DNA of 64,000 nt from Paragordius varius (taxonomy: Eukaryota > Animalia > Nematomorpha). The position numbers were made by a program, and so were the translations under genes. How positions within the stretch are numbered: the stretch's first letter is position 1; the number at the start of each line of letters is the position of its first letter. Location of the stretch: NCBI GenBank assembly GCA_964247055.1, contig OZ176057.1, forward strand, positions 2,852,001 to 2,916,000, in the 5' to 3' direction. Below are positions 3,820 through 33,880 of the stretch, one piece after another. A model generated the notes under the pieces. The model was not told the DNA's origin. It searched no databases and was given only the letters and a program-made list of their open reading frames with translations.

Positions 3820-3865
3820 ATGATTTTGATAGCCTTATTCCTAGCCCTTAGTAGATTCGTTTCAA
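3820..3865 (+). CDS. Gene 1 exon 1: signal-peptide-like MILIALFLALSRFVS, phase-1 donor
   Basis: ATG ATT TTG ATA GCC ... GTT TCA A|gtttat. Hydrophobic core, followed by an 83-nt intron. Same ATG ATT start and GTT TCA R|gttt end as gene 3 exon 1. Confidence 0.75.
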
Positions 3866-3948
3866 GTTTATCTTCTTAATTTTTTATAAATTAACGAATT
3901 TATAAACATTTTGTTGAGTAACCCTATATCAATTTTTTTAATACATAG

Positions 3949-3975
3949 AAGCCGAAGGGTATGCGGTAGCTCCAG
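3949..3975 (+). CDS. Gene 1 microexon (27 nt): (K)AEGYAVAP
   Basis: tttttaatacatag|AAGCC...CTCCAG|gtaaaa. GC island, symmetric phase 1, open frame. Confidence 0.8.
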
Positions 3976-4171
3976 GTAAAATATATATTATCTGCCGTTT
4001 TATTAGTTAAGATATTGGTGATTATTTTTTAATTTAAAAAAAATTAAATTTGATTTATAAATGGATTCTATTAACCATATTAATTATTGATTTAATAAGA
4101 CTAACTAAGGGGGCAAGTTGTTAATTTAAAAAAACATTCATATCTGTTTTCAAATTCAATAGAGTAAGTCG

Positions 4172-4173
<2 letters not shown>

Positions 4174-4225
<52 letters not shown>
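4174..4225. repeat. (TA)n microsatellite (others at ~4301-4328, 18938-18968, 37652-37713)
   Basis: Direct reading; these explain the YIYIYI ORFs in the track. Confidence 0.95.
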
Positions 4226-4228
<3 letters not shown>

Positions 4229-4298
4229 GAAAAAGGGTCAAAATTATAAAAATCTTATATTGATTATTTTTTGGAGATTTAAAACAAAAATAATTTTG

Positions 4299-4333
<35 letters not shown>

Positions 4334-4849: not shown

Positions 4850-4897
4850 GATGCTGGCCTGTGTGTGTGCCAGCTCAGCCCCCTACTGTCAAGCCAG
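4850..4897 (+). CDS. Gene 1 exon (48 nt): (G)CWPVCVPAQPPTVKP
   Basis: tatttttag|GATGC...AAGCCAG|gttatt. Symmetric phase 1, C-x3-C plus Pro-rich tail. Confidence 0.85.
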
Positions 4898-4981
4898 GTT
4901 ATTACTTTTACAATTTTATAGTGCTTTCTTATGGCAAATATATATATTTTAAATTAAAAAAAAAATTTATCAGGATTCTAG

Positions 4982-5203: not shown

Positions 5204-7682
5204 GTATGACATATAAGCAGTTTATCATTTAAAAATATTTAATTTTAATTATTAATTAAATAACCCTTAAAAGACAGTGTAAAACCTTTACTTGGTATTA
5301 ACTAATTTTAGTAGAGTCCTAAAGTTTTTTCTAATATAATGAATCCCAAATTATAAAACACAGAATAACTTAATTATGACTTCAAAAACTTTTTTATATA
5401 ATATTAATTTACGTTTAGCCCCAAAAACTATATTTTTATTAATATTTTTTTTAAGGGATAAAAACTATGATCCCAAAAAATATTTGAAAAACAGCCACAT
5501 GATATAAAATTTTCAACTTTCCAGGTTTTGGCAAAGATTTATATATAATTGGGTTAAAAAATAATTATATTCTATTTGCCTACTTAATATTTTAACTATA
5601 CAATTATATTTATCCATATGTTTTTATGCGATCGGACGAATTTTCTGGAAATACGGCCCGCGCAGCCCACCCCTGATTAGGCATATAATATAGCATATTT
5701 TTTTCAAAGTTTTTATGTAATTTACAATTAAAAGCACCAGAGAACGTTTTTATATGCCTGTGTCAGATTTAATTACATCACACAATTAATAATGTGTTAT
5801 CTTTTTAATTCTTAACTATTAATTGAAAAATTTATTAATTGGAGAAAACAAATCGTGTTAATTTGCGTCTATACGAACGTATCATATTATATTTTAATTT
5901 AATCAAAAGGAAACAATGACATTTCATAATACTACCTTAGAAATGTTATGTATATATACACTGTGTGCATTTAACTTCAATTTTTTTTATAAGATAGCTT
6001 ATGACCAGTGAATTTTGCCGCCAAAATTAATATTAGTTGGCAATTTATTTTTGGAGTAATAAGAGAAAATAGAAATTGGGCAGGAAGTAAAGAAGATTAA
6101 TTAAGGGTAATTAAAAATATGATAAGACTTGAGAAATAATGATTTATTATCATTTTAGCAGATATTTACAATATATAAATAACCTAAATTCACATATTTA
6201 GGGTTTTTTAAAAAATTCAAATCTAATCTATTAACCTACGTAAAAGACAAAAAAATTTTAGGAAATCATATTTTGTTTAATTATTTACAAGCCATCATTA
6301 TTAAAACCATATTCATATTTTATTCAGTAAAAAAACTTGTAATTTTCTATAAAAATTTTTTAATGAAAACTTAATGCATCATTCTAAAATTATTATTAAT
6401 GTATCACATACCATATTATGAAAAGGACATGACAAAGCATTAAAATTTTGGTCCCTTTAAAAATAGGCTGGTTTTCTTAAAATAAACGCAAAAATCCCGA
6501 GAATTAAAGAACTTCCGATATATATAGTTTCCAAAAAACAACTACCTGGTTCGAAAAAACGATAGTAATTTGCATTGATCTGCAAAACAGTTAAAACTTC
6601 ATTTTTGAATTCAAATAGACGCCGTAGCATATTCCCCTTAGACTTAATAATTTATTAAATAAATTAACTAGTACTATTAAATAATATGTTTATTAACATA
6701 AATTTAAGATCACATCTAATCGTTCGCGCCCCCTCCCAACCCCTAAAATTTTTTTGGTTTCCCTTTTGAAAAACCAGTGTTCTTGCACATCATATTTAAA
6801 ATTATTATCGTATTTCCTTTGTGATGTGATAGAATGGGAAATTTATCGGAGCTCAGAATTTATGTTAATATTTAATAAAATTATTTTAATATGGTTAATA
6901 ATTTAAAAATTTTCTAATATTTTATCAAAAAGATGATTAAAATATCCTCAGAAGCAATCCTTTATTTATTATATAAAAAGATGGCGTTTTCCGCCTTCTC
7001 ATAAAAGATTTGTTATTTTTTATTCAAATCTTACACCAAAGTCCAAATTATTAGGACTTTCTGAAAAGAATGTAAAACTCCTTTGATTTTAGTATAATCT
7101 TATGATACATTTTAACAAATAAAATTTAGTAGACACCGTTTCAACAATTACATTTTTGGATATTGTTTACGCTGAAGTGTGATTGTATTACTATATATGG
7201 AATAATTCAGCAAAAATTATATAAATTTATTATGATATAATATTTCTATTACTACAAGTAATCTTTTCTTATTAACAATACACACATGTTTTTTTAGTTT
7301 CATATCTCATTAAATATTTTTTACTTTAAAATTTAAATTTTAGTTTATATTTAATTTTATTTTTACGTTTGACAAAGATTACTTGTAGTAATCGAAATAT
7401 TATATTATAATAAATTTATATAATTTTTGCTGAATTATTCCATATATAATAATTACATTTTTATTAAAGATAAATGTACGATAAAAAGGGCATTTTTGAT
7501 TTTACTAATACTAAAATGATTTAAACTTTTTAAGCATTTAAACGGCATTTATAATTTCTATATCGAATGTTATACGATTCGATAATATCTGTTTGGCGCC
7601 TACCGTGCAATAAAAAATGTTACACAGACACAACTATAAACTATATTAGTTACAAAAATATATGATAATATATTAAATTTAG

Positions 7683-7760
7683 CATGTCCGAATTCTAGAT
7701 GCAACAGCCAATGCTCTATTAAAGTCCTTATAGATGAATGTGAACAATGTGTTTGTCCCG
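7683..7760 (+). CDS. Gene 1 exon (78 nt): antistasin-like 6-Cys module, copy 1, CPNSRCNSQCSIKVLIDECEQCVCP
   Basis: aaatttag|CATGT...TGTCCCG|gtaaat. Spacing C-x4-C-x3-C-x8-C-x2-C-x-C resembles the antistasin-type pattern (central loop usually ~10). Confidence 0.9.
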
Positions 7761-8379
7761 GTAAATTTATTATTTTTTGGCAAGATGCCATTTATATTGT
7801 AAAATTTTAATTAAGATATTTGATCTGTAGATAATTCATTTTATATGGAAATTTATTTAACCGCATTTTTGATTTATTTATAATTTTATATGAACTGTTT
7901 TTAGATAAATTTCAGTATATTTTATATTTAATCTCTCAAGATACGGGCATGTTTAGAAAAATAATGCATGCTTGCTTATTACCAACGGTGCTTTATAAGC
8001 TAAAAATATATATACGGTCTTTACTCCGCGTCATAGTTTATGATGTATTTTGTCTATTGCCTTTTTTACATGGGTAAACAAACTATTTTAAACTAAATAC
8101 AGTTAGGAAAATAAAAATTAGATATGAGACTAGATTATGTAAATTTAATCCATAATTAAAAAAAATAATGTAAGATAGGGAAAAAGGGGTTTAGTTTCAA
8201 GCATTTGTTGTTTTTTACCTATATGCTACTGTATTACCAATCTGGCAACATTAATATGGATCTAGCAATCGTAAATCCCGGGAGGCATTTTTTACCAAAA
8301 AAAATTATTTACCATTCATTAAATTATTTGGTAAATATAAATGAATTCTGGGCATTTACTTATCAAACTGTCGTTCCCT

Positions 8380-8830
8380 ACTATTGTTGATGCTAAGGTC
8401 GATTCCGACTAACTGCATTGTAAATATATCTTCTCCACTCAAGTCAATCAGATTCGTTTCAATGTACATTTTACACCCATATAGTAATGTGGGGAATACT
8501 ATGGCCTATTAATCTGATTTTGGTTTTTAAATCATGGGATCAAATCTGTCTGTGTTTCGTTTGGTTTTTGAGGTAGATTGTTGTCATTATTTATAATACT
8601 AGCCAAATAGGTGTAGCTGTATACGGTTTCAATCGGATTTTCGTTGAGAATTATTGAGTTGATTGTCTGAGCCGGATTGATTTGTATTACTATTGTTTTT
8701 TGTTTTAAGGTTAATTTTTAATCCGTATTTATTGCACTCGATTGTAATTATGAATTTGCGATAAGATATCGATACTGTTAACGAAAAGCTGTGTCATCAA
8801 TAAACTGAGGTGAGAAACTCACCTTCTAGA
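8380..8830 (-). mobile_element. Decayed LINE RT C-terminal fragment (copy ~12245-12690)
   Basis: Minus-strand ECNKYGLKINLKTK...NENPIETV...PTLLYGC, typical of the non-LTR RT 3' region. Confidence 0.7.
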
Positions 8831-9434
8831 ATGATGTCAGAATTTTTTGGTAAAATTTTTACTATGATCCGAGATAGGCGTTTATAATAATTAGGACCTA
8901 TTATATTATTCTTTTTTAAAAAAAAATGAAAAAAAAGGCGACAAAAAAGTATGATATGAATTTTTTTTCAATTTTACATAATTTAAATAATATTTTTTGT
9001 ATTATGCGCCTAAAAGACTAAAGAAAGCATATTTTTAAATTATGCCTAATATTTTAAATTTTAAACTACCCCAAAAGCTGATGATTGAATTAAATATGAA
9101 AAAACATTGAAAAACAATATTTTATTTATAAATCAATGTTGTAATTATACAATTTATAGTAAAAATTAATTTAGGATTAAAGTATGTTGTCTTTAAAAAA
9201 ATTTTGCTTTGTCTGTATAACTACTAATTTTATTAGATGTTTGAAATATTTCAACAATTATGTTCACTATGTAATCTTCTAACAGTTTAAGACAAACTTA
9301 CAATAATGACAACATTCTACATTAATAATATAATATTAAAATATTATTTTGCCTGACAACCTGAGTTGTTTAGGATCAAATGATGTACAGTAATGCTACC
9401 TATTAGTCCATTTATATATTTTAGTTGTCTAAGG

Positions 9435-9679
9435 CAGGGGTGCGAAACAAATGGCTTGCATTTTCGGAAATAAATCTTGCGGACCGCATGGCATTTACAA
9501 TATCTTATTAAAATTTAAACACAACTCTTTAAAAACTACTATTTATTTTAACATTTTTTGCTAGTTCATTGCCGAATTCGGGAAAAATAACAGAAAATTT
9601 GTTATAAAAATAATTTTAGATTTGAATATCATAAAATTTTATATTTTAAATTTCTTGTGCTGAAGGTTGGCCACCCCTG
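9435..9679. mobile_element. hAT-type MITE (copy 13290-13536)
   Basis: TIR CAGGGGTG/CACCCCTG with near-perfect 8-bp TSD gtctaagg/gtctaaag. Confidence 0.85.
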
Positions 9680-9783
9680 GTCTAAAGGATAATTAAATTT
9701 ACATGTCTGTTGGCATGTATGAGATACTTTACAATATACATTCTAAAATTTTTGTTATTAAAATGCTATTTCATTGCAGACAG

Positions 9784-9795
9784 ACGGCCACACTA
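9784..9795 (+). CDS. Candidate microexon (D)GHT (copy at 13641-13652)
   Basis: ttgcagacag|ACGGCCACACTA|gtagtt. GC island, but the upstream AG (9778-79) would give xRRPH-stop, so boundaries are ambiguous. Confidence 0.3.
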
Positions 9796-10101
9796 GTAGT
9801 TTTAGCATAGAATTTAGCATATTAACATGTGATAGTTAAAAATAATATAAAATGCAAAATCTTGCAAAACAATGAATAAAAATTAAACAAAGTAAGCAAA
9901 ACGGTCTTTATTAAAAAAAGTTTGTCTCTATGTTTTGTATTATCCCTTTTAATTCAAAGACAACTAAACTACTGAAATGGCTACATTATTAACTCTTTCG
10001 TTATATACTTTAACAGCAAATTTGATTTGATTTTATTCCATATGTATTTTATAAAGGGAAATCTTTTATATAAAACAATATTCTTTTATACATGTTACCA
10101 G

Positions 10102-10131
10102 CTCAACCAATGCCACCACCACAACCACCAG
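10102..10131 (+). CDS. Gene 1 Pro-rich microexon (30 nt), copy 1: (A)QPMPPPQPP
   Basis: catgttaccag|CTCAA...CCACCAG|gttttt. Symmetric; all three frames are open, and phase 1 is chosen from neighbouring exons. Confidence 0.8.
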
Positions 10132-10238
10132 GTTTTTATTTAGTTACTTTTTGTTTTTTATAAAAAAAGCACTGTAGTAAAGTATGAGTAAGTATAAATT
10201 TCTAGTTTTTTTAATTATTTCTAGAATCATATATACAG

Positions 10239-10247
10239 ATAGTGTTG
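10239..10247 (+). CDS. Candidate 9-nt microexon (D)SV (copies 14098-14106, 16048-16056)
   Basis: atatacag|ATAGTGTTG|gtgtac. A competing donor 2 nt downstream (gtacgt/gtatgt) gives 11 nt. Identical in three copies while the adjacent sequence has an indel. Confidence 0.45.
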
Positions 10248-10325
10248 GTGTACGTTAATATTATTTAAAATAAATAAAAGTGTATACTGTTTATAAATTT
10301 TTATTACACCTATTCAAACATTTAG

Positions 10326-10343
10326 TAGTATCTAAGACTCGGA
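10326..10343 (+). CDS. Candidate 18-nt microexon (V)VSKTR with NAGNAG acceptor (copies 14185-14202, 16132-16149: VVSKAR)
   Basis: catttag|TAG TATCTAAGACTCGGA|gtaaaa. Both acceptors keep frame; 78-nt upstream intron; one synonymous CGG/CGA difference among copies. Confidence 0.45.
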
Positions 10344-10641
10344 GTAAAAAGATATTTTTAAATTGCAAATAAATCAACCTTTATAATTTAATTAAGTTAC
10401 TTTAATAATATCCTCTTTTTTGTACATTTAGTAAAATAATCAGTAATGTATAGAGTTTTGCAATTATCTTTTACTGCCTTGATACGCCTGAGCTATTTAA
10501 TCAGGAAAAGTAAATTTTGGGACAAATTTTATATGAAGTTTTAGCTATGTAATTAGATGTTTGACGTAAAATATAAACATCTCAAGCTTTTCTATATCAA
10601 TTTTTTCTTTGGTTTTAAAATGTAAATAGGCTAATAAATGG

Positions 10642-11010
10642 TATACCATTTACAGTTCAAATTCACCCTTGAACAATTCAAATTCACCCTTGAACAATTC
10701 AAATTCACCCTTGAACAATTCAAATTCACCCTTGAACAATTCAAATTCACCCTAAAAATAAATTATGAAACTTCGGTCTAATATAACTCATCATAAAAAT
10801 TATATATTTTTATGGCAAAGTTTATTATTTTTTCAGTATTATTTTGATTACATACAAAAATTTTTTTATAAATATAAAAAATATAGGTAATATATAATCT
10901 TAAAAAACACATAATTTATTTTAGGGTGAATTTGAATTGTTTGAAGGTGAATTTGAATTGTTCAAGGAATTTAAATTGTTCAAGGGTGAATTTGAACTGT
11001 AAATGGTATA
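10642..11010. mobile_element. Foldback/MITE with 21-bp subterminal arrays (copies 14509-14845, ~16450-16690, ~37990-38260)
   Basis: TIR TATACCATTTACAGTTCAAATTCACCC with tandem TTCAAATTCACCCTTGAACAA units. Confidence 0.8.
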
Positions 11011-11529
11011 TTAAGAATTAATAAATAGTTTATTATAAAAAGGTTAATTATATTTAAGCAGCAAATTTGGATATTTATTGATTAAGCTTATTCAATTTTG
11101 GATTATAGAACTTATAATCTTTAAAAGATTGATACCCTTTTTATCTAATACAGATTAATGTCTCACTAAATATTTTTTACTTTAAAATTTAAATTTTAGT
11201 TTATATTTAATTTATTTTTACGTTTGACAAAGATTACTTGTAGTAATCGAAATATTATATTATAATAAATTTATATAATTTTTGCTGAATTATTCCATAT
11301 ATAATAATTACATTTTTATTAAAGATAAATGTACGATAAAAAGGGCATTTTTGATTTTACTAATAATAAAATGATTTAAACTTTTTTAGCATTTTAACGG
11401 CATTCTATATCGAATGTTATACGATTCAATAATATCTGTTTGGCGCGTACCGTGCAATAAAAAATGTTACACAGACACAACTATAAACTATATTAGTTAC
11501 AAAAATATATGATAATATATTAAATTTAG

Positions 11530-11607
11530 TATGTCCAAAACCTAGATGCAACAGCCAATGCTCTGTTAAAGTCATTGTAAGGGGATGTGTACATTGTGTT
11601 TGTCCCG
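11530..11607 (+). CDS. Gene 1 exon (78 nt): antistasin-like module, copy 2, CPKPRCNSQCSVKVIVRGCVHCVCP
   Basis: aaatttag|TATGT...TGTCCCG|gtaaat. All six Cys are kept relative to copy 1, with 13 nt differences. Confidence 0.9.
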
Positions 11608-13964
11608 GTAAATTTATTATTTTTTGGCAAGATGCCATTTATATTGTAAAATTTTAATTAAGATATTTGATCTGTAGATAATTCATTTTATATGGAAATT
11701 TATTTAACCGCATTTTTGATTTATTTATTATTTTATATGAACTGTTTTTAGATAAATTTCAGTATATTTTATATTTAATCTCTCAAGATACGGGCATGTT
11801 TAGAAAAATAGTGCATGCTTGCTTATTACCAACGGTGCTTTATAAGCTAAAAATATATGTACGGTCCTTACTCCGCGTCATAGTTTAAAATGTATTTTGT
11901 CTATATTGCCTTTTTTACATGGGTAAACAAACTATTTTAAACTAAATACAGTTAGGAAAATAAAAATCAGATATGAGACTAGATTATGTAAATTTAATCC
12001 ATAATTAAAAAAAATTAATGTAAGATAGGGAAAAAGGGGTTTAGTTTCAAGCATTTGTTGTTTTTTACCTATATGCTACTGTATTACCAATCTGCCAACA
12101 TTAATATGGATCTAGCAATCGTAAATCCCGGGAGGCATTTTTTACCAAAAAAAATTTATTTACCATTCATTTAATTATTTGGTAAATATAAATGGATTTT
12201 GGGCATTTAATTATTTAATCATACTGTAATTCCCTACTATTGTTGTTGTTGCTAAGGTCGATTCCGACTAACTGCATTGTAAATATATCTTCTCCACTCA
12301 AGTCAATCAGATTCGTTTCAATGTACATTTTACACCCATATAGTAATGTGGGGAATACTGTGGCATATTAATCTGATTTTGGTTTTTAAATCATGGGATC
12401 AAATCTGGCTGTGTTTCGTTTGGTTTTTAAGGTAGATTGTTGTCATTATTTATAATATTAGCCAAATAGGTGTAGCTGTCTGTATACGGTTTCAATCGGA
12501 TTTTCGTTGAGAATTATTGAGTTGATTGTCTGAGCCGGATTGATTTGTATTACTATTGTTTTTGTTTTAAGGTTAATTTTTAATCCGTATTTATTGCACT
12601 CGATTGTAATTAAGAATTTGCGATAAGATATCGATACTGTTAACAAAAAGCTGTGTCATCAATAAATGGAGGTGAGAAACTCACCTTCTACAATGATGTC
12701 AGAATTTTTTGGTAAAATTTTTACTATGATCCGAGATAGGCGTTAAAAATATTAGGACCTATTATATTATTCTTTTTTAAAAAAAATGAAAAAAAAGGCG
12801 ACAAAAAAGTTTAATATGAATTTTTTTTTCAATTTTACATAATTTAAATAATATTTTTTGTATTATGCGCCTAGACTAAAGAAAGCATATTTTTAAATTG
12901 TGCCTAATATTTTAAATTTTAAACTACCCCAAAAGCTGATGATTGAATTAAATATGAAAAAACATTAAAAAACAATATTTAATTATATATCAATGTTGTA
13001 ATTATACAAATTATAGTAAAAATTAATTTAGGATTAAAGTATGTTTTCTTTAAAAAAAATTTTGCTTTGTCTGTATAACTACTAAATTTATTAGATGTTT
13101 GAAATATATCAACAATTATGTTCACTATGTAATCTTTTAACAGTTTAAGACATTACAATAATGACAACATTCTACATTAATAATATAATATTAAAATATT
13201 ATTTTGCCTTACAACCTGAGTTGTTTAGGATCAAATGATGTACAGTAATGCTACCTATTAGTCCATTTATATATTTTAGTTGTCTAAGGCAGGGGTGTCC
13301 GAAACAAATGGCTTGCATTTTCGGAAATAAATCTTGCGGACCGCATGGCATTTGCAATATCTTTTTAAAATTTAAACATAACTCTTTAAAAACTACTATT
13401 TATTTTAACATTTTTTGCTAGTTCATTGCCGAATTCGGGAAAAATAACAAAAAATTTGTTATAAAAATAATTTTAGATTTGGATATCATAAAATTTTATA
13501 TTTTAAATTTCTTGTGCTGAAGGTTGGCCACCCCTGGTCTAAAGGATAATTAAATTTACATGTCTGTTGGCATGTATGAGATACTTTACAATATACATTC
13601 TAAAATTTTTGTTATTAAAATGCTATTTCATTGCAGACAGACGGCCACACTAGTAGTTTTAGCATAGAATTTAGCATATTAACATATGATAGTTAAAAAT
13701 AATATAAAATGCAAAATCTTGCAAAACAATGAATAAAAATTAAACAAAGTGAGATAAGCAAAACGGTCTTTATTAAAAAAATGTTTGTCTCTATGTTTTG
13801 TATTATCCCTTTTAATTCAAAGACAACTAAACTACTGAAATGGCTACATTATTAACTCTTTCGTTATATACTTTATCAGCAAATTTGATTTGATTTTATT
13901 CCATATGTATTTTATAAAGGGAAATCTTTTATATAAAACAATATTCTTTTATACATGTTACCAG

Positions 13965-13994
13965 CTCAACCAATGCCACCACCACAACCACCAG
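13965..13994 (+). CDS. Gene 1 Pro-rich microexon, copy 2
   Basis: Identical to 10102-10131 with intact splice sites. Confidence 0.75.
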
Positions 13995-15643
13995 GTTTTT
14001 ATTTAGTTACTTTTTGTTTTTTATAAAAAAAGCACTGTAGTAAAGTATGAGTAAGTATAAATTTCTAGTTTTTTTTAATTATTTCTAGAATATACAGATA
14101 GTGTTGGTGTATGTTAAAATTATTTAAAATAAATAAAGGTGTATACTGTTTATGAATTTTTATTACACCTATTCAAACATTTAGTAGTATCTAAGGCTCG
14201 AAGTAAAAAGATATTTTTAAATTGCAAATAAATCAACCTTTATAATTTAATTACGTTACTTTAATAATATTCTCTTTGTTTGTACATTTAGTAAAATAAT
14301 CAGTAATGTATAGAGTTTTGCAATTATCTTTTACTGCCTTGATACGCCTGAGCTATATAATCAGGAAAAGTAAATTTTGGGACAAATTTTATATGAAGTT
14401 TTAGCTATGTAATTAGATGTTTGACGTAAAATATAAACATTATCTCAAACTTTTCTATAACAATTTTTTCTTTGGAATTATTTAAAATGTAAATAGGCTA
14501 ATAAATGGTATACCATTTACAGTTCAAATTCACCCTTGAACAATTCAAATTCACCCTTGAACAATTCGAATTCACCCTAAAAATTAGTTATGAAACTTCG
14601 GGCTAATATAACTATTTTTATGGAAAAGTTTATTATTTTTTCAGTATTATTTTGATTACATACAAAATTTATTTTTTTATAAATATAAAAAATATAGGTA
14701 ATATATAATCTTAAAAAACACATAATTTATTTTAGGGTCAATTTGAATTGTTCGAAGGTGAATTTGAATTGTTCAAGGGTTAATTTGAATTGTTTAAGGG
14801 TGAATTTGAATTGTTTGAGGGTGAATTTGAACTGTAAATGGTATATTATGAATTAATAAATAATTTAATGTAAAAAGGCTAATTATATTTAAGCAGCAAA
14901 ATTTGGATATTTATTGATTGAGCTTTCTCAATTTTGGATTATAAAACTTAAAATCTTTAAAAGATTGATACCCTTTTTATCTAATACAGATTAATGTTTT
15001 GTTATATTTTAACCAACTTTCAACAGCAGTTTTTATCAACTTAAGTTCTAGGGTTTAAAACTACCCGAAGAGGAGATCTTCCAAAAATATAAATAACCAA
15101 ATCATACAGGGGTTTCTATAAAATCTCAGTTCAAAGAGGGCGTTTTTCTTTCTCGCAAACACAAAAGACAAAATATTTTATGAAACTATATTAAAAAAAA
15201 TTTTTAATTAAAAGAACATATATAAAAATAACTAAAAATATTTATTATTTTTTCATTTTTTTGTTTCTCGGTTTATGTTAATATGAAATTTTATATAAGC
15301 GGAAATTATAAAGTATAATTAAATGAAAATAAAATTTACAAAAAAACCAAAATCCGTCACCAGTAAAAATATTAATATGTGTTAAAACAAACATTTTACA
15401 GGGATTTGTAAAGATTTTTCGTTGATATTCCAGTACTTTTAAATCATATTTTGCACTTATATAATATTTAATTCCCACTCACGTAAGATTCCAAAAGTAT
15501 AAATTTTTTATACACTCAGAAACAAGATAAAAAAAATGACAAAATAAAAAACATATGTTTTATTTTTATTGGATATATAAGTTTTTTTACTGAATAAAAT
15601 TTGTATGTGATTTTGTATATAATTAAAAAAATTATTTTGACAC

Positions 15644-15663
15644 TAGGGTTAGGGTTAGGGTTA
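15644..15663 (+). repeat. Interstitial telomere-like (TTAGGG)3 patch
   Basis: tagggttagggttagggtta, absent from the paralogous position at ~17424. Confidence 0.7.
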
Positions 15664-15915
15664 AGAAACCCCAGACTAAATTTAATTTAGAATTTTTTAA
15701 AAAACTACTGAAAGAAAGGGTCCCAATTTATATTTATGCTTCTATCCTAAATTATATCCCTTTTAATTCAAAGACAACTCAACTACTGAAATGGCAACAT
15801 TATTAACTCTTTCGTTATATACTTTATCAACAAATTAGATTTGATTTTATTCCATATGTATTTTATAAGGGGAAATCTTTTATATAAAACAATATTCTTT
15901 TATACATGTTACCAG

Positions 15916-15945
15916 CTCAACCAATGCCACCACCACAACCACCAG
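15916..15945 (+). CDS. Gene 1 Pro-rich microexon, copy 3
   Basis: Identical to 10102-10131 with intact splice sites. Confidence 0.7.
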
Positions 15946-18455: not shown

Positions 18456-18488
18456 TTGTAGTATGTTACCATCCTGGACAATGTTCAA
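18456..18488 (+). CDS. Gene 1 microexon (33 nt): (x)VVCYHPGQCS
   Basis: cttttttgccacag|TTGTA...TGTTCAA|gtataa. Homologous to gene 3 exon 57464 with mostly third-position differences. Confidence 0.85.
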
Positions 18489-18557
18489 GTATAATTTACA
18501 ATATATTAACTATCTTGAAATAAAAATAATTTAATTGACAAAATATATTGTTATTAG

Positions 18558-18581
18558 ATGTTCCTTGTAACCCACCATGCT
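18558..18581 (+). CDS. Gene 1 microexon (24 nt): (N)VPCNPPC
   Basis: ttgttattag|ATGTT...CCATGCT|gtaatt. Symmetric, 69-nt upstream intron. Confidence 0.8.
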
Positions 18582-18976: not shown

Positions 18977-18997
18977 ATCCAGATCAGCATAGAAAGG
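18977..18997 (+). CDS. Gene 1 microexon (21 nt): (Y)PDQHRK
   Basis: attattttag|ATCCA...GAAAGG|gtaaaa. Symmetric phase 1. Confidence 0.75.
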
Positions 18998-23083: not shown

Positions 23084-23206
23084 GTATTTGAACAACAAAA
23101 AATTATTTAATATAATTTTTTCAGTTAAACAATATATCCCTTTGTGTACACATGAAATATTATTTATTTATAATTGCGCAATATAATCCATATTATTTTT
23201 TTATAG

Positions 23207-23251
23207 ATGATGATGAGGATGTTATCTTTAAATTTTTCAGACAATTCTTGG
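23207..23251 (+). CDS. Gene 1 exon (45 nt): (D)DDEDVIFKFFRQFL
   Basis: ttttttatag|ATGAT...TTCTTGG|gtaatt. Symmetric phase 1. Confidence 0.8.
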
Positions 23252-24388: not shown

Positions 24389-24441
24389 TTTGCCACCTTC
24401 CCGTGGTGTTGGCTGGGGCATGAAAATGCGCTAACGGCAAA
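24389..24441 (+). ncRNA. HDV-like (nested double pseudoknot) ribozyme core, 5' P1 strand missing
   Basis: P2 TTTGCC/GGCAAA; P3 ACC/GGT; L3 TTCCCGT; P1-3' GTTGGCT; GG (P1.1); P4 GCAT-GAAA-ATGC; J4/2 G-C-TAAC with putative catalytic C at 24431. Confidence 0.85.
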
Positions 24442-27400
24442 GGCCAGTTTTCTAATGATCTGTAAAATCATTAGTTGTACACAAGGGCATGTGATACGTA
24501 AAAAATTGCCTCAATAAACCATGAAGTATAATAATATGAATATGAAAGAACACTAAAACCTTATCAACATCTCAAATAACAATAATAATTCAACTTATAA
24601 TAATTATTTTGATAATATTTCCCATTTACACTTTTATACACTATATTTTTTGATATATACTTTGAATAAAAATTACCAAAATAATTATGAAAATAAATAA
24701 TACCGTTAGTAATAATAATAAAACAGTTCTGAAATTTGCCACATGAAATGTGGGTACCCTAGTTAACAAAATATTAATGATAACAAACACTCTTAGCCAT
24801 AACAATATAGATATATGTTGCATCCAAGAGGCCAGAATGAAAGGAGAGGGATTGAAAAACTTAGACAATTATACATTATTCCATAAAGGAAATGACAAGG
24901 GACAAAGTGGTGTTGCGATTTTCATTAAAAACATCTATCGTGATAATATAATTGATGTAATAAGACATAATCCAAGAATGATTCAAATAAAAATATTGAT
25001 GAATGATAATGTAATAAATATAGTTTCAACTTGCGCACCACAATCTGATCTAAGTGAAACATCAAAAAACGAATATTGGGAAGCCCTCTATGATTTGATG
25101 AACAAAACTTCTTCTAGCGAACAAACTTTTGTTGGTGGTGATTTTAATTGCCATATAAATAATGATAGTAATGAATACCATGGCGTGCATGGTGGAAATG
25201 GCGTTCGAGCCCTCGATAAGATGGGCGAGAGTTTGCTAGACTTTTGCATTGCAAATCAACTCATAGTCGCAAATACCCATTTTAAGAAAAAAACCAACAG
25301 CATATAACATATAATTCCGGTGACCACTCATCTATGATAGACTTCATATTAATTCCAAAAAACATTAGGAAACATCTAACAAACATCAAAACTTACTATC
25401 ACTCCTCTTACCAACACAAGCTAATAACAGCATTTCTAATCATTGAGAAAATCCGAAGACCGCATTCCAACATCAAAAAATAAATATAGCAAAGTTAAAG
25501 GATTCAAAATTATTAACCGATTATACCAAAAACACAGAGTTACATCCCGAACGAAACAATGTTGAAACTCTATGGAAAAATTTTAAAAGCACAATTCTAA
25601 CAGCTGCCAAAAAACATTGTGGTTTTACTAAACCAATGAGGCAACGGAAAAGCTGGTGGTGGAAAAATGAAATAAAACCATTGTTGCGTGAAAAAGGCGA
25701 AGCATATAAAAAATGGAAAAGTTCCAAAAATAATGATAATAAAAAAGTTTATAATGATAAAAAACGAGAGGTCCAAAAGGCCATTCGACGCGCTATGAAT
25801 CCGTTAAAATCGCTGAAAGTTTAGAAAAAGACTTTAAAAACCAAACGATTTTTAAAAGACTCAAAAACCTTAACAATAGTAATAAAGATGTTAAAACCAT
25901 AAAATGTATTAAAGATAATAATGATAATATAATAACGAATCCCTCGAAAGTCAAAGAAATTTGGAAAACGAACTTAGAAAAACAACTCAACCAAGTAAAC
26001 CCGACCAAACACCAGTAGCTGGTCCCATACAAGATATCACCATAGATGAAGTCACAACTGCAATCAATATTTTAGTAACAAAGCTCCTGGCCCAAGCAGC
26101 CTTTCAGTCGACCTCATTCGACCCATCAAAAACACTGCAGAGTATCTAACAAAACTCTTTAACCAAATAATAATTACAAACCAAACTCCCAGCGATTGGA
26201 AGAACAGCATAATAATCCCCATTTATAAAAATAAAGGCGATCGACTAAAAACATCGTCCTACCGACCTTTAAAACTTCTGGAACACACACTGAAAATATT
26301 CGAAAATATATTGGAAAACAGGCTGAGAAAACATATAAACATAGATTCGAATCAGTTTGCATTCCGTCCAAACAGTAGCACAATAGATCCCTTGTTTATC
26401 CTAAGACGCTTACAAGAAAAATATCTGGAAAAGAAACAAAAGCTATACCATGTCTTTGTAGATCTGGAACGTGCCTTTGACCAACCACGCACCACAATTC
26501 AATGGGCACTACGTAAAAAGGGAATAGAAGAACATACTATACAAATCTTATTATTACTCTATAAAAATACAAAAACCAAGGTTAGAACCAATATCGGCAA
26601 TATAAGCAATTTCCCAACCAATGCTGGACTACATCAGGGTTCAGTTCTAAGTCCACTCCTTCTTATAACTATAATGGATGCGGCAACGCAAGACATAAGA
26701 ACTGAATGCCCTTGGGAAATGTTATTCGCCAACGACCTCGTGATAACGACACGATCATGGGATCAAATGGTAAATACATATACCAAGTGGAAGAAATGCC
26801 TTGAACAATATGGAATGATTATAAACGCCACAAAAACAAAAATAATGATAACGGGTGAAAGTGAAACACCCAGATACCCCTGTTCCATTTGCAGTAAGGA
26901 AGTACGTTCAAATTCCATTAAATGCATATCATGTCAAATGTGGGTACACAAAAAGTGCTCTAAAATAAAAGGAAAGTTAACAAACGTAATATAAATGTTT
27001 AAATTGCTTAGCCCAAGCAATAATAATTTTAATCGACCAAAGCTACTTAACATTGATGGACATGACATCGAATTGGTTGACTCTTTCGTATACCTAGGAG
27101 ACGTCATTACATCTCAGGGAGGCCCACAAAAGGCTATCAAAAGAAAAATACAACAAGGTTGGATAAAATATAATCAGTTAAAATATGTTTTCCAAAACAA
27201 AAATGTTAACAATCGTAATAAATGGTATATTACAAGGTAGGAATAAGACCTGCTCTTACCTATGGTTCTGAAACCTAGGCATTAAACAAAATAAATCAAA
27301 CAAAACTCCTAACCAGTGAGAACCGAATACTCAAAAGCTGCTTTCGCACACCAGAATTACCAATTTTCATTAAATAAACCGATAAAATTGATTATATAAT

Positions 27401-27657
27401 TCAAACTAACAGATTGCGTCTATACGGTCATACTCAGAGAAGAGACGCCACCCATCCGTTAAAAACTGTTGAAAACATTAATGTTGATGGCAATAGAAGA
27501 AAGGGACGACCACTCTTTTCCTATAATGATAATATAAAAATGGACTTAAATCAACGTAGCCTTTCCACAGAACAATGTAAAGATCGTAACTTATGGAGGA
27601 AACTACTTTGTGGATACAAAACTCCGAATATGGAGTCCTAAAATTATCCATCCATCC
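24389..27657 (+). mobile_element. Near-full-length decayed RTE-clade LINE (APE endonuclease + RT, PHD-like Cys/His insert, (TCCA)n tail)
   Basis: KFAT*NVGTL, CIQEAR, GGDFN, YRPLKLL, GLHQGSVLSP, MLFANDL (ADD decayed), FVYLG, LYGH, GRP. Stops and frameshifts throughout. Confidence 0.92.
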
Positions 27658-28579: not shown

Positions 28580-28618
28580 AGTTACTACTACTTAGCCGTT
28601 CACATTCTGGAATAGGAG
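28580..28618 (+). CDS. Gene 1 exon (39 nt): (E)LLLLSRSHSGIG
   Basis: tatataacag|AGTTA...ATAGGAG|gtatat. Symmetric phase 1. Confidence 0.8.
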
Positions 28619-31061
28619 GTATATACTACATATTGTAAAAAAATTATTTTTTGATCAACATATGTAATTGGTAAATTTTTGCTAAATTTAAAAAAAACCT
28701 ATGGTTAAAACAATAGAATTAATTAATTATTTAAACGTATTTAAATCAAGGTAATTTCCAAATTTAATTAATATTTTAAGGTCAAAATTTATATTTATTT
28801 TTTTTAAATAAACATTCAGATCCGAAAAACTTGAAATGTTGCATTTATAAAAAATGCGCTAAATGAGTCGATTTTAAGCAGGCATTAGGAAATTACAAAA
28901 TCTTATAATATTTTTATAAAAAATGGCTTTTTGGGACCTATTGCTGTTAATATTAGATATATAAAATAAAATAAAAACAGTTTTTTTCAAATATCTTTAA
29001 GTTTGTACTAGCTAGAAAGTTACACTGTGTCCAAAAAAGAGGGTTAATTTTTTTTAAATTTTACAGTGCTTATGATCAGAGAATTTATTTGCCGAAATTT
29101 ATTTGTTGAGGACCTAGATTTTGAGATATTGACAGATAATCGAAATCGAGCAAAAATTGAAAATTAAATATAATTAAAGATAATTCAAAAATAATGATAA
29201 AATTTGAAATATTATGATATTATCATTATATAAGATATTTCCAAAATATTAATGCCTAAAATCATATTGTTAGGCTTTCTATAAAATCTCAGATCAAAAG
29301 AGGGTTTTCTTTAACACACTTAAAAGATATTTTTTATGAAACTATAATAAAATAATTATTTATTATTTACTAGTTAAACTCAATTAAATTCATATTTTGA
29401 GTAAAATATTTATATTAAAATAAAAAAAATATTGTTTTTTTATTTTTATATTATTTATCATCTGGTTTATGAGTGTAAAAAAATTTTTACTCTTTTATTT
29501 TGGAATCTTACATGTATGGGTGTTAAAAAATATATAATTTATGCAGAATAAAATTTATTTTCAACCAATCCGTAAATCCCTGTAAGGTTTTTTTGAACAC
29601 AAATTAATTTTACTGGAATATGTAGTGATATTTGGTTTTCCACTACTTTAAAATACTATTTGCATGAATTATATTTATAACCCCGATTCATGTAAGATTC
29701 CAAATAAAACAGTATAAATTATTTATACACTCATAAATCAGATGACAAAATATTGAAAAATAAAAAACAATATTTTTTAATTTTATTTTGATATATAACT
29801 TTTTTACTGTATAAAATATGAATGCTATGATTTTAATAATGAATTTAGCGAGTAAATAATAAAAAAATTAAGTTTTTTTATGTCTTATAAGACATTTAAA
29901 AGAAAAAAGCCATCTTTTAGCTGAGATTTATAAAAACCCTAGCAATATGATTAAGCTATTTATATATAGGAAATATCTCATATAATAATAATATAAATAT
30001 TATCTTATTTTTCAATTTTCTCTCAATATTTTAAAACAAGATCGTAAACAAATAAATATTTTTACTGCAAATGAATACGCTTGTCATAAGCTATCTCATG
30101 ATTTTGTTAAATTGCTTGCACACAGTGTTATATATAATAATTATTTAATATGCTTAACACTTCAGAGCTCTACTTTTTTGTCCTGGTTTATCTTTCTGGG
30201 GTAGTTTTATATTTCAGATCAATTTTGTAAATAAACTAATGTTTTGAAAGATATTGTATTTAATCAAACATTTTTCCTATGTTTTAAAAGCATATCTATT
30301 TTACAGTTTTGTTTAGAACTTAAATTGCGATAGCTCCAAAACAGAATTGCAACAAACAGCTTATATAAAAATAAAAATATATAAAGTTTTTGCTGACAAA
30401 TGTAGCATTAAAGCTTTTTATTATTAGTTATACACATTTTCTAATCATAAAACATTTATTGCCTGTTGCATTGGCAAAAAAATTATAAAAAAAGACGGCA
30501 AAAAAGTTTGAGATGAGGTTTTTTACAATTTTTAAAAAAAAAAATTGTAAAACGCGCCTTAAAGGCTACAGAAGCATTTTATTTAAATTAGGCAGTACCT
30601 TTTTAAATTTTAGATTTGATATAGCCTTAGTATATAAAACTACCCCACAAGGTAATAGAGCGTTAATAATATAAACACATGCAGTTTGATTATTTTAGTT
30701 TTTAATCATAACAGATTTAGTTAGTTATATAAATTTTACAATATGACTTTTAAAGATTACACATTGATTTATAAATGTTGAAGCTTATATAAACCAGGTT
30801 AATTTATTGATTTTAAATTTTAATTAATTAATTTGAATTTAAAAAAATTATATAATAAACAGTATACGAAAACGCCTGACTTCATATATCAATTTCTTAG
30901 TTTATTTTTACTTCATAATCAATTTCTCAATTTATTTTTCTTAAATAATGCAACATGTGTCCCCTAAATTTTTATTTTGCTTTTATGACGTTGGATCCTA
31001 TTGGATGCTCGAATTATCCAAAAAAGTTAATCATCTAAAATCAGTACCATATAATTATTAG

Positions 31062-31127
31062 GTTTGAATCCTTTTAATGGTATGCTTGGAGGCGGTAGCG
31101 GTTCAAGCAATTCAAATTTGGATTTCG
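31062..31127 (+). CDS. Gene 1 exon (66 nt): (G)LNPFNGMLGGGSGSSNSNLDF
   Basis: aattattag|GTTTG...GATTTCG|gtatgt. Gly/Ser-rich, similar to 33652-33711. Confidence 0.85.
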
Positions 31128-31354
31128 GTATGTGATCAAAAAAATTAAATAAATTATAAATGGTTACGAAAAAAGTTTGTAGCGAGAGGTATGCTTGAAA
31201 ATAGAAATGATAAAATAATTTAATCCATTTTACGGGAAAACAAATTTGACATATTATTTCTTTTTTATATTGCACGCATTTTGCCGTAAAATATTATTTA
31301 TATATTGGTTTTATTCTCTAACTCTATATATATATTTTTTTTGTTATCTTGTAG

Positions 31355-31369
31355 TGGCCAGATTTTTGG
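31355..31369 (+). CDS. Gene 1 microexon (15 nt): (V)ARFL
   Basis: ttgttatcttgtag|TGGCCAGATTTTTGG|gtaatt. Ends like exon 23207 (TTG G|gtaatt). Confidence 0.75.
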
Positions 31370-33651
31370 GTAATTTGTTTTTTATACATTATTATTATTA
31401 GATTACACTACACCTTGTCATACATAGAGCTGCGCTAAAAATAAAATAGCATACTAAAACATTCCTGTAACACAGGGGTTCCCAATACAAATGGGTCGCG
31501 GGACGCATTTGAAACATTTATGGGCATTCATATATAATTTCTTAGATTTCAAACATAAAACTGCAAAATAAAAACGGAACTATTTCTTGTTCTCTATTGG
31601 AGAGACTTATTTAGAAAAATAAAAATTACCAATATCACTAAGATTTCATAACCACATCTTTGTATTATGGATGCCAAATTTTTGGCGGGCCGCGTGTTGC
31701 ACTTCTGCTGTACTCCTTGTATTATGTTTAATATAAAATATGAAAATTTTGCTAGATATTAATCCGAGAAAGCTAAGAAGTTAAAATGCAAAAATTGTAT
31801 ATTTTACATATTTTCATAATTGTGAGATATGTTACCTAACTAAATTAGCAAAAACTTGAATTTCACATAAATGTTATATACACATTGCACTATGTTAATG
31901 AATTATATATTTGGTAAATGTATCAAAATTCTTATGGTACATTTGGTTTTAAGCCTTTACAAAAATATTCACATTTTTGTACTCAAACATCGTAAAATTT
32001 GTTTAATTTCTGTGCTAAAAACAATTTTTGGTGAAAGCCAAATGCATTCCAAAATATTATTAATCTTTCATTATAAGCTATAAAAAAAGAAAATATTTTT
32101 ATTAAATAGTTATTTTTACTGCTCACAAACCTCAAATTTATCCGCCACCAAATATATTAGTTTTTTAATAATTAATCCCAAAAACCGAGAATACGCGATA
32201 ATTTTTAATACATGATAAATTATAGCATCAATTAAAGCATACTCTATTTTAATTTTTAATGTTTGTTGGAGCTATCATCCTTTTTAAAGCATCAGCGCTT
32301 AAAAGCATTATAAGTTAATAAAATATTTTTATATCTGCAATGAATATATCTATCACCGATTTTTTAAAATGCAAAAGGAAATAAAAACATAAGATATATT
32401 TATTTAATGATAGAAATGTTGAAGTCTATTGAGTTATGCCTAAGTATTTACTAAACGTGTTTTTCTACCGGTTTTCTCATTTTTCGAAATAGCTTAAGCA
32501 GGCTTTAACGAAATCATTTAAATTTTTAAACTAAGTGTGCTTTTTTAAAAAAATAAATTTGGTACTATAAAACAGGGATGTCCAAAACCCTTTTTGGTAT
32601 CCCAAAAGTGGTAAAAAAATATTTGATTTTAATATTTACAGTTATTTTATAGATATATCGCCAAAAATTGGCCTAAAATTAAAAAAAACCAAAAATATTA
32701 AAGTAAACCGGCAAAATTGTTGTATGGGACACCTCTGCTTTAAAATATCATTCACTATAGATTTCGCTAAATATAGGATATTTGCGTTTATTTTAAGAGA
32801 AATATCCGGTTCTGGAGTGAGGCAAAATTTTAATTTCGGAGCCCTAATAAAAAAAATTTAGAATTTTTTTTTACCTTTTAAATACAGTATAACATATGTT
32901 TTATTTTTTTGGAATGGATTTGTTGCCACAAAATATTAAGCTTAATAAACGCAATTCTATTTTACGACTTCGGGTAATACCACATAAAAAATATAACATC
33001 CTTTAGTAAGCCCCGTAATTATAGATATCCATCAAACATATATTAGATGAATGATTAGGATTATATAAATACTCGCTTTTCCAATCTAAAATAGCTAGCA
33101 AGAAATTAGTATCAAAATTTTAAGAGCTTGTGATAAAGTAAAGTGTAATGCGTAAATGATAAATTTTGTTTTACAAATAAATTTCCATCAAATTTTGTAA
33201 AATAACATTTATTAGATTGGTTAAAATATTTTTACGCTCTGTTTAAAATTTGTTTAATTCAAACATTTTTTATTAATTAAGCTGATAATAGATCTTAATT
33301 ATTAACAATTATGTTTATAGGACACAGAATAAACATAATGTTCTTAGATGGGCAGTGGTTATATTCATATCTAAAATTTCTTGCGGTTAGCCCTGACTTT
33401 AAATGCCTATAAATTATACTTTATAAGTTATTTACCATTTAATCATACCAAAGAACATTAATCATAAACATTTTTAGTTTGGTTTTGCTATATACAATGC
33501 GACCCTAAAATTTACAAAAGATTATGAAAGTTGGTAACTTTTATAAAATAAGAAATGTTGAATATTATATTATTAAATCTAAATTTAAAAACTTTAAAAA
33601 TATTGAAATATATGCAAAAAATAATTATATTATATCGTTATTTAATTATAG

Positions 33652-33711
33652 GTTTAATGCGTAGCTTTGGTGTTGGCGGCAGTTCAAGCAGTTTTAATCA
33701 TGATTTGAACG
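33652..33711 (+). CDS. Gene 1 exon (60 nt): (G)LMRSFGVGGSSSSFNHDLN
   Basis: ttaattatag|GTTTA...TTGAACG|gtatat. Symmetric phase 1. Confidence 0.85.
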
Positions 33712-33809
33712 GTATATAATTTTACAAATAAAATTTTTAAGGGGCTTTTTAGATTTAATGGCAAAATAATTATAGTATAGATTAAATAATCATTGTTAAA
33801 TTTTGATAG

Positions 33810-33880
33810 ACAACATATTTTTGTCACCGAGTTTTATGCATTTTCTAGTATTAACTATTTTGACAGTAAATCAAATCTAA
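33810..33880 (+). CDS. Gene 1 putative terminal exon: (D)NIFLSPSFMHFLVLTILTVNQI-stop, GPI-signal-like tail
   Basis: ttttgatag| acceptor after a 98-nt intron. Open to TAA at 33878-33880; hydrophobic run FMHFLVLTILTV. Confidence 0.65.

Follow-up and report, generated by a model that had tools for sequence, protein, structure and literature searches.

Gene structure and exon content

The window analysed here, a stretch of 64,000 nt, carries on its plus strand a gene of very small exons, gene 1, predicted at 3820–33880. Its 17 segments sum to 741 nt (246 codons and a stop), which reproduces from the sequence the original prediction of about 740 nt, 17 exons and an uninterrupted ORF of about 246 residues; the peptide order along the gene was also recovered as predicted. 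Coding sequence makes up 2.5% of the locus. All 16 introns are GT-AG, with lengths of 69–5328 nt. The predicted phase 1 of every internal junction was likewise borne out, since all 15 internal exons (15–78 nt) are multiples of three and open in phase 1, although the exon set had been picked for that phase and non-symmetric candidates with a similar splice score exist (33321–33357). Phase 1 is the only open phase in exons 4, 6, 13, 14 and 16. The 5′ half, which is rich in Pro (28%) and Cys (15%), comprises the following exons:

3820–3865, plus strand: exon 1, ATG and signal-peptide h-region, ending in phase 1
3949–3975, plus strand: exon 2, 27 nt, or 24 nt if the tandem acceptor at 3952 is used; splice sites strong, 59% GC
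4850–4897, plus strand: exon 3, 48 nt, Cys pair and Pro linker, highest score in the cross-validated scan
7683–7760, plus strand: exon 4, 78 nt, six-Cys module A, C-x4-C-x3-C-x8-C-x2-C-x-C
10102–10131, plus strand: exon 5, 30 nt, poly-Pro spacer
11530–11607, plus strand: exon 6, 78 nt, six-Cys module B
13965–13994, plus strand: exon 7, poly-Pro, same sequence as exon 5
15916–15945, plus strand: exon 8, poly-Pro, same sequence as exon 5
18456–18488, plus strand: exon 9, 33 nt (27 nt if it starts at 18462), with weak splice scores and a Cys pair of the C-Y-x3/4-C type
18558–18581, plus strand: exon 10, 24 nt, Cys pair
18977–18997, plus strand: exon 11, 21 nt, possible read-through to a stop at about 19020

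The N-terminal signal peptide is predicted from a hydrophobicity scan and an A-x-G site, and is likely to be cleaved behind the A-E-G of exon 2. On the plus strand of the 64 kb, just two exons look like signal exons and have a good donor, exon 1 and that of the neighbouring gene 3, and the Cys pair type of exon 9 is common to both genes. Every Cys-bearing internal exon has an even Cys count. An alternative C-Y-x3-Q-C frame across the poly-Pro exons was rejected, as it scored at null level and lacked an in-phase acceptor.

Support for the gene model

Splice matrices trained solely on the neighbouring gene (56–63.5 kb) were used for a cross-validated scan, in which symmetric exons open in phase 1 accounted for 8 of the 15 top plus-strand candidates; 100 local shuffles gave 2.7 on average, and one of them reached 8. 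The same scan gave three such candidates among the top 15 of the minus strand; a comparison of the two strands by itself (9/15 vs 4/15) was not significant (P = 0.14). For the 3′ half alone the count was five of eight, which none of 100 shuffles matched. The six-Cys spacing occurs twice in the real sequence and never in 200 shuffles. Exons 2–8 and 13–16 are supported independently of frame. The strong support originally claimed for all 17 exons was not confirmed for exon 9 with its weak splice scores, exon 12 (29% GC) or exon 17 (middling acceptor), which, taken singly, are not distinguishable from a background in which about 18% of top shuffle candidates are short open symmetric segments. We regard gene 1 as very probably a real coding gene, and there is good support for reading it as a micro-exon gene that encodes a Cys/Pro protein with a signal peptide.

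Duplication and divergence of the six-Cys module

The two six-Cys exons derive from a 3.9-kb tandem duplication, and the locus records one older and two recent duplications in all:

7296–14997: recent tandem duplication, copies 7296–11161 and 11152–14997, carrying the six-Cys and poly-Pro exons
15755–17533: partial third copy, holding only a poly-Pro exon

Exons 4 and 6 differ at 13 of 78 nt and 10 of 26 residues (38%), with about 11 nonsynonymous changes, 1 synonymous change and all six Cys kept. The introns of the two copies differ at only 88 of 3675 positions (2.4%; exon vs intron, P ~ 4e-8) and the exon flanks at 2.3%, so the exon is 7-fold more diverged than the introns; no 78-column intron window holds more than 8 differences. 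Nine of the 13 changes fall in the stretch from Cys3 to Cys5 (P = 0.06), a region that forms the beta-hairpin of the exon 6 structure model (pLDDT 82). Nonsynonymous change is accelerated between these paralogous exons relative to the intron rate within the locus; pN/pS computed from the exon (0.18/0.08) does not reach significance on its own (P = 0.44). Even if divergence is set at 7.6%, nonsynonymous changes are numerous (P = 0.005).

Pieces specific to each copy, with alleles of both, occur in an independent sequencing run. Run X5 contains an older flank, 92% identical, joined to copy-2-type alleles. Runs X5 and X6 were considered as related species and rejected as such, because their pieces match the window or copy 2 without differences, at a depth of 2–5. 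Difference-free, low-depth pieces of window DNA are present in runs labelled as two other organisms, which could reflect a parasite sequenced inside its hosts, or else contamination.

The 3′ half and the end of the gene

The downstream exons are rich in Ser (17%) and Gly (14%), contain no Cys, and are listed here with further candidates:

21423–21484, plus strand: candidate alternative last exon, hydrophobic and stop-terminated, absent from the 17-exon model
23207–23251, plus strand: exon 12, 45 nt, acidic patch and amphipathic helix, moderate support
24389–27620, plus strand: decayed RTE-type non-LTR retrotransposon in intron 12, in the sense direction, its ORF interrupted by stops and frame changes
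28580–28618, plus strand: exon 13, 39 nt
30166–30230, plus strand: candidate alternative last exon, hydrophobic
31062–31127, plus strand: exon 14, 66 nt, Gly/Ser-rich, paralog of exon 16
31355–31369, plus strand: exon 15, 15 nt, paralogous with 35713–35730, flanks included
33652–33711, plus strand: exon 16, 60 nt, Gly/Ser-rich, paralog of exon 14
33810–33880, plus strand: proposed exon 17, with the stop and a hydrophobic tail
35713–35730, plus strand: additional 18-nt exon beyond the proposed stop, symmetric, phase 1, strong donor

A 20-nt GT-AG intron inside exon 12 was considered and rejected, because only 25 nt would remain and the reading frame would change. The RTE protein has a best database match of 47%, and the 5′ end of the element carries an HDV-like core; an Rfam search returned nothing. 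The core should not cut the pre-mRNA, since no P1 strand lies nearby upstream.

The original placement of the gene end at 33880 was not confirmed, since the exon 15 paralog at 35713–35730 (BLAST E 5e-6 over 66 nt; z 5.0 vs local shuffles) lies downstream of it and three other hydrophobic last-exon candidates are available between 19 and 36 kb. The predicted GPI-like tail is hydrophobic, uncharged and rarer than chance, since of 371 minus-strand acceptors 1 gives an equivalent; it has three competitors, however, and no clear omega site was identified in it. A 21-nt internal exon (33810–33830) with a weak donor is another reading of the segment. Homology among candidate tails was not significant after 21 comparisons, the 33810/42416 pair being borderline. 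It is doubtful that 33880 is the main end of gene 1.

One transcript or two

A hidden second signal exon in gene 1 was sought and none was found: besides exon 1, the window scan gave none with a good donor between 3865 and 56177, as the original prediction had stated for the interval between the two halves, and the 3′ half offers no usable in-frame ATG. Gene 3 (56–63.5 kb) is a paralog of gene 1 and follows the order signal, Cys/Pro modules, hydrophobic tail. Since no second signal exon was found in that interval and gene 3 shows this order, we infer that a single transcript over both halves is the most parsimonious reading, and it is more likely than not that the two halves form one transcription unit. 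The gene could nevertheless stop before 23.2 kb, via 21423–21484 or by exon 11 read-through.

No RNA run was found for 30960–33960 (297 sampled words, with about 11 expected in exons 14, 16 and 17 if expressed), which does not imply silence, and five putative RNA runs contained next to none of the words of exons 14–17. Two putative RNA runs gave no contig over 4780–10240 (exons 3–5), again without implying silence.

Possible antistasin likeness of the six-Cys module

Each protein search took a single exon as its query, of 25 residues or, where lengthened by a few in-frame codons of the intron, 31. Exons 4 and 6 gave no Pfam match at E up to 1 and 10, where queries of 25–31 residues have low power, only chance matches among PDB sequences, and nothing from ESM Atlas features or from phmmer against 1.84 billion representative proteins. 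The exon 6 model has a pLDDT of 82 and that of exon 4 is poor (pLDDT 53); Foldseek and VIA searches of PDB structures with the module models yielded no significant match, and the closest ESM Atlas shape was a CRIM1-like antistasin/VWC cluster (TM 0.48 over 31 residues).

From the Cys spacing and this one weak shape match, the module may be described as antistasin-like. The 26-residue pattern C-x4-C-x3-C...C-x2-C-x-C may correspond to that of Hydra antistasin, CRIM1 and the C-terminal subdomain of leech antistasin and hirustasin (PF02822), and the modules would likewise be secreted and are arranged in tandem, one per exon. The Cys3-Cys4 loop is about 10 residues in typical members of the family but 8 in gene 1, whose modules are also parted by poly-Pro micro-exons and lack a Pfam or PDB match. 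The loop that we take, by analogy with hirustasin, to hold the reactive residue is invariant, and its Asn is unusual for an inhibitor. Hydra antistasin has six-Cys repeats of 25–26 residues (PMC7851590), a size with which the gene 1 module agrees. The ten-Cys antistasin domain has disulfides 5-8, 6-9 and 7-10 (PMC6265900), for which the equivalents in a six-Cys module of the family would be 1-4, 2-5 and 3-6.

Proposed explanation and alternatives

We lean towards gene 1 being an intact micro-exon gene that has grown by cassette duplication, bears diversifying antistasin-like modules and encodes a small protein, secreted or anchored at the surface. Gene 1 would belong to a tandem cluster of related genes and would enlarge by tandem duplication of genomic segments bearing phase 1-1 cassettes, every duplicate copy remaining in frame because all internal exons are such cassettes. 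Its product would consist of a signal peptide and small disulfide modules spaced by stiff poly-Pro, followed probably by a flexible Gly/Ser-rich part and a hydrophobic C-terminal anchor. The modules, if antistasin-like, may serve as binding or protease-inhibitor units, and the excess change observed in their second loop may reflect diversifying selection since the duplication, of the sort that a parasite-host interface would be expected to bring. A host-facing role appears to us an even proposition. Exon skipping would be allowed by this layout but unnecessary to account for it.

A single 17-exon transcript from which combinatorial splicing makes a ladder of GPI-anchored isoforms, in the manner of schistosome micro-exon genes (MEGs; PMC4350168, PMC8293314), would exploit the symmetry of the internal exons and their even Cys counts, which keep disulfides paired after skipping. 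The original prediction that any exon could be skipped is correct as to frame, but joining exon 10 to exon 13 would create a TAG stop, since exon 10 alone ends in T; this is the only possible skip that does so. Three identical poly-Pro exons and in-frame duplications nevertheless account for the symmetry without regulated skipping, exons of at most 36 nt form only 8 of the 15 internal exons and 28% of coding length, the 3′ end is ambiguous, and the putative RNA runs gave no contig on exons 3–5 and next to no words of exons 14–17. This ladder seems to us quite improbable, and substantial combinatorial skipping of any kind is rather unlikely; phase symmetry is already explained by DNA-level exon duplication directly visible at the locus. 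Another reading divides the locus into a Cys/Pro gene (exons 1–11), ending at 21423–21484 or by exon 11 read-through, and a Gly/Ser array (23–36 kb) that is separate or orphaned with an unrecognised start, or a decaying remnant cut off by the RTE insertion. The sharp contrast in composition suggests it, as do the introns on either side of exon 12, at 4.2 and 5.3 kb the longest in the gene, the hydrophobic end of the 21423 candidate and its acceptor, the best-scoring of the interval, and gene 3, which has only about 110 residues and no Gly/Ser part. That acceptor score, however, owes something to a short TTA run, the 3′ half has neither signal exon nor usable ATG, its exons are still open in the shared phase and have strong splice sites, and the HDV-like core should leave the pre-mRNA uncut; we consider the division unlikely.

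A role in structure or adhesion, for instance in cuticle, egg string or cyst wall, with Cys cross-links and poly-Pro rods as spacers as in leech cocoon protein and cnidarian minicollagens, would make the difference between exons 4 and 6 a matter of relaxed constraint or of gene conversion from an older copy. An antistasin-like protein of the leech cocoon wall appears in the references of PMC7851590, and the term antistasin-like occurs in limpet and sea-star adhesive papers; the older flank in run X5 has copy-2-type alleles, and pS of 0.08 fits its distance. Relaxed constraint, however, cannot surpass the neutral rate seen in the introns, a conversion tract would need to end at both exon edges and leaves the nonsynonymous count high even at 7.6%, and the Gly-X-Y repeat of minicollagens is absent. 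There is a small chance that this role applies. Chance assembly of AG...GT islands in 25% GC DNA could produce many symmetric segments, including exons 9, 12 and 17, but not readily the doubled six-Cys pattern, the exon paralogy, divergence confined to an exon yet sparing its Cys, or a second gene with the same plan, and the independent run showing both duplicate copies speaks against an assembly artefact; either origin is very improbable. The preferred account of cassette duplication might be extended to a large MEG-like family arisen independently in a third parasite lineage, the horsehair worms, in which in-frame DNA cassette duplication and positive selection on antistasin-like binding loops, together with combinatorial RNA skipping and a choice between hydrophobic last exons, provide a variable surface or secreted repertoire against arthropod host proteases; we give this extension a small chance as well.

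Comparison with known systems

Fast-evolving secreted micro-exon genes have been described from blood flukes and aphids, and no report from horsehair worms was found in the literature searched, whose coverage is incomplete. If the DNA is from a horsehair worm, the micro-exon layout has evolved once more, in a parasite of an unrelated lineage. Ordinary annotation would miss such genes, given the small coding share of the locus. The locus appears to catch the process in the act, with a duplication 2.4% diverged in its introns and an added module 38% changed in residues with all Cys kept. It could be used to distinguish phase symmetry that serves splicing variation from plain DNA-level module gain, and to ask which host molecule the module binds.

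Gene 1 resembles the MEGs of Schistosoma (PMC10526429, PMC4350168, PMC8293314) in its 10–20 short symmetric exons, long introns and signal peptide, as well as in clustered paralogs, transposon-rich surroundings, exon duplication and raised nonsynonymous change. MEGs, however, consist mainly of exons of at most 36 nt, and their alternative splicing is demonstrated, whereas the exons of gene 1 are predicted from DNA alone; two of these hold whole 26-residue disulfide modules, and sequence similarity was neither found nor expected. Aphid bicycle genes (PMC9168663) likewise have about 17 exons, internal exons that start at codon position 2 (phase-1 introns) and secreted, fast-evolving products. 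Their gene-structure classifier (coefficients from PMC9168663), trained on aphids, scores the gene 1 model at 0.993 against a cut-off of 0.72, which reflects layout and not homology. Gene 1 lacks the paired CYC motifs, and its module models as a beta-hairpin, whereas bicycle proteins are reported to be saposin-like (PMC13552887). The design of gene 1 matches both schistosome MEGs and aphid bicycle genes and belongs to neither. The in-frame duplication of symmetric phase-1 exons is also shared with class 1-1 exon shuffling. That process builds mosaic secreted proteins by duplicating such exons, but the cassettes of gene 1 are far smaller (5–26 codons) and are mostly linkers or Cys pairs rather than folded domains.

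Gene model and exon support

The locus at 3820-33880 (plus strand) is a real micro-exon gene. Rebuilt from the sequence, the original prediction was reproduced at 17 exons, 741 nt and 246 codons, with introns that are all GT-AG and 69-5328 nt in length. Phase 1 had been claimed for every internal junction, and all 15 internal exons are indeed multiples of three and open in that phase; in exons 4, 6, 13, 14 and 16 it is the sole open phase, which fixes the frame. Because a phase-consistent exon chain could be selected to fit, we also ran a frame-free test, in which candidates were ranked with splice matrices trained only on gene 3, a neighbouring paralog:

56177-56228, 56327-56368, 56447-56464, 57464-57523, 59531-59584, 61261-61284, 63447-63529, plus strand: gene 3, paralog, seven exons

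Eight of the top 15 candidates were symmetric phase-1-open exons, against 2.7 in shuffles (eight being reached in 1/100) and three on the minus strand under the same ranking. The 3′ half alone gave 5/8, which no shuffle attained; the difference between the plus and minus strands, taken alone, was not significant. Given this enrichment, the exon set as a whole is real. The description of all 17 exons as strongly supported is not confirmed: the weak single members 9 (poor splice scores), 12 (GC 29%) and 17 (middling acceptor score) are unproven. The symmetry of the internal exons would allow frame-safe skipping in general, but joining exon 10 to exon 13 would create a stop. At most, the layout permits combinatorial splicing.

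Words from 30960-33960 (about 11 of those sampled being exonic) were next to absent from five putative RNA runs under the species' own label, and two of these runs yielded no contig for exons 3-5, where contigs prove presence, not absence. The gene may be stage-specific.

Tandem acceptors occur on the plus strand at 3949/3952 (exon 2, 3 nt apart) and 18456/18462 (exon 9, 6 nt apart), and either choice stays in frame. Exon 12 contains a 20-nt GT...AG stretch (23221-23240, plus strand) whose removal would cause a frameshift. A possible extra symmetric exon of 18 nt (or 9 nt) lies directly 3′ of each poly-Pro exon (14089-14106, 16039-16056 and about 10224-10246, plus strand); in the last of these, the first copy, five additional nucleotides would abolish the 18-nt reading. 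At the start of the poly-Pro exons (10093-10113, 13956 and 15907, plus strand), a second frame reads C-Y-x3-Q-C, resembling exon 9 and the gene 3 cassettes. This frame had no in-phase acceptor and scored at the null level; it is possibly a trace of the poly-Pro cassette's origin.

Duplications and divergence

Extracellular modules are ordinarily duplicated by way of symmetric phase-1 exons, and this is the route visible at the locus. The segment 7296-11161 is repeated as 11152-14997 and in part again as 15755-17533, which makes exons 6, 7 and 8 copies of exons 4 and 5. The 3′ half rests on an older duplication: the alignment of exons 14 and 16 extends into the flanking sequence (z 6.7-9.6), and the counterpart of exon 15 is a symmetric exon of 18 nt at 35713-35730, absent from the first model (E 5e-6, z 5.0). 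At the breakpoint of the incomplete third copy (15646-15663, plus strand) lie three TTAGGG-type telomeric hexamers.

The recent duplication is not confined to one read set: some pieces in an independent run carry copy-2 letters (11152-14997) at twelve sites while others fit copy 1 (7296-11161) alone. Two haplotypes set in tandem are an unlikely alternative. The same run contains an older flank, 92% identical, without a 394-nt insert, which implies a further copy or allele elsewhere. Versions lacking 7079-7472 and 7890-9006 are present in X5 and X6, two coded runs labelled as other organisms, so these stretches are insertions, either polymorphic or missing from another copy of the locus. Runs labelled as two other organisms contain 150-280-nt pieces of window DNA with zero differences at depth 2-5, which fits a parasite within the sequenced hosts, or contamination.

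Exons 4 and 6, which encode the two six-Cys modules, differ at 13/78 nt, compared with 88/3675 (2.4%) in the duplicated introns (P ~4e-8) and at most eight differences in intron windows of exon size. About 11 of the changes are nonsynonymous and one is synonymous; 10/26 residues but 0/6 cysteines are changed, and the Cys3-Cys5 interval takes 9/13 of the changes. The pN/pS within the exon (0.18/0.08) is not significant by itself. Gene conversion from an older copy could have raised this distance, but the tract would need to end at both edges of the exon, and the nonsynonymous count is high even at 7.6% (P 0.005). The divergence is the best evidence for translation of the six-Cys exon and points to diversifying selection; DNA duplication with exon-restricted amino-acid change is demonstrated here.

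The six-Cys module

The cysteine spacing, C-x4-C-x3-C-x8-C-x2-C-x-C over 26 residues, was absent from 200 shuffles. The six-Cys repeats of Hydra antistasin are of the same size (PMC7851590). Protein searches and folding were performed one exon at a time. The module found no match in these sequence searches or against the PDB. The single-sequence model of exon 6 (pLDDT 82) forms the variable loop as a beta-hairpin, and the closest match to it by shape in the Atlas, a CRIM1-like cluster containing antistasin repeats, reaches a TM of only 0.48; exon 4 gave a poor model. With these blank searches, the low TM and the poor exon 4 model, "antistasin-like" denotes resemblance, not membership. By analogy with hirustasin, the reactive residue would follow Cys2; the module has an invariant Asn at this position, which may mean binding without inhibition. 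We infer an antistasin-like fold, secretion of the product and a host-facing role.

Extent of the transcription unit

We lean towards both halves, Cys/Pro (exons 1-11) and Gly/Ser (exons 12-17), forming one transcription unit, which would be read as a single transcript. On the plus strand of the 64-kb window, signal-like exons with a good donor occur only at 3820 and 56177, the latter belonging to gene 3, and the 3′ exons have no usable in-frame start. Gene 3, with internal exons that are all symmetric phase 1, displays the family plan of a signal exon, Cys-pair and Pro cassettes, and a strongly hydrophobic tail. Against a single gene, the two halves differ in composition, read-through of exon 11 reaches a stop, and there are four hydrophobic stop-ended phase-1 candidates (21423, 30166, 33810 and 35300), versus three on the entire minus strand.

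It is rather doubtful that 33880 is the main end of the gene. The proposed exon 17 tail, a putative C-terminal anchor, is rare under the null (1/371); the exon-15 paralog at 35713 lies downstream of this end, and 33810-33830 could instead serve as an internal exon of 21 nt, its donor being weak. Two further segments, situated between the genes, are possibly true 3′ exons, or the remains of another gene:

42416-42495, plus strand: stop-ended phase-1 segment, strong acceptor, borderline match to exon 17 over a motif of five residues
54441-54601, plus strand: stop-ended phase-1 segment, strong acceptor, containing a hydrophobic stretch

Other elements in the window

The window has a GC content of about 25% and animal-type DNA; the 26.9% of Gordionus montsenyensis (10.1101/2023.06.26.546503) is compatible with this, no more. 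It contains no long ORFs besides those of a decayed RTE-type element and a Ty3/gypsy-type remnant.

24.4-27.6 kb: RTE-type element, decayed, intronic
24389-24448, plus strand: HDV-like ribozyme core, 5′-terminal in the intronic RTE
48101-51865, minus strand: Ty3/gypsy-type remnant with gag, protease, RT, RNase H and integrase pieces, stops and frame changes
10642-11010 and 14509-14845: palindromic MITE-like element, inverted arms being arrays of a 21-nt unit

The RTE protein has a best match of 47%, and a PHD-like zinc finger directly follows the reverse transcriptase domain of the remnant (26311-26994, plus strand), as in many of its relatives of 40-47% identity. The HDV-like core lacks an upstream 5′ strand of P1 nearer than 23387, which makes cleavage of the pre-mRNA by this core improbable; it had no Rfam match, and a matching 7-mer lies directly downstream at 24442. 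No envelope ORF was seen in the Ty3/gypsy-type remnant. Shorter relatives of the MITE-like element occur at 16452-16687 and 37990-38262.

Comparison with known systems

For horsehair worms, our literature search found no paper describing micro-exon genes or antistasin-like genes. The layout works like that of schistosome MEGs (PMC10526429, PMC4350168, PMC8293314), which are defined by mainly having exons of ≤36 nt, whereas such exons make up 28% of the coding region here. The locus lacks the motifs of aphid bicycle genes, yet scores 0.993 with the bicycle gene-structure classifier; the "phase 2" exons of bicycle genes begin at codon position 2, and thus correspond to phase-1 introns (PMC9168663).
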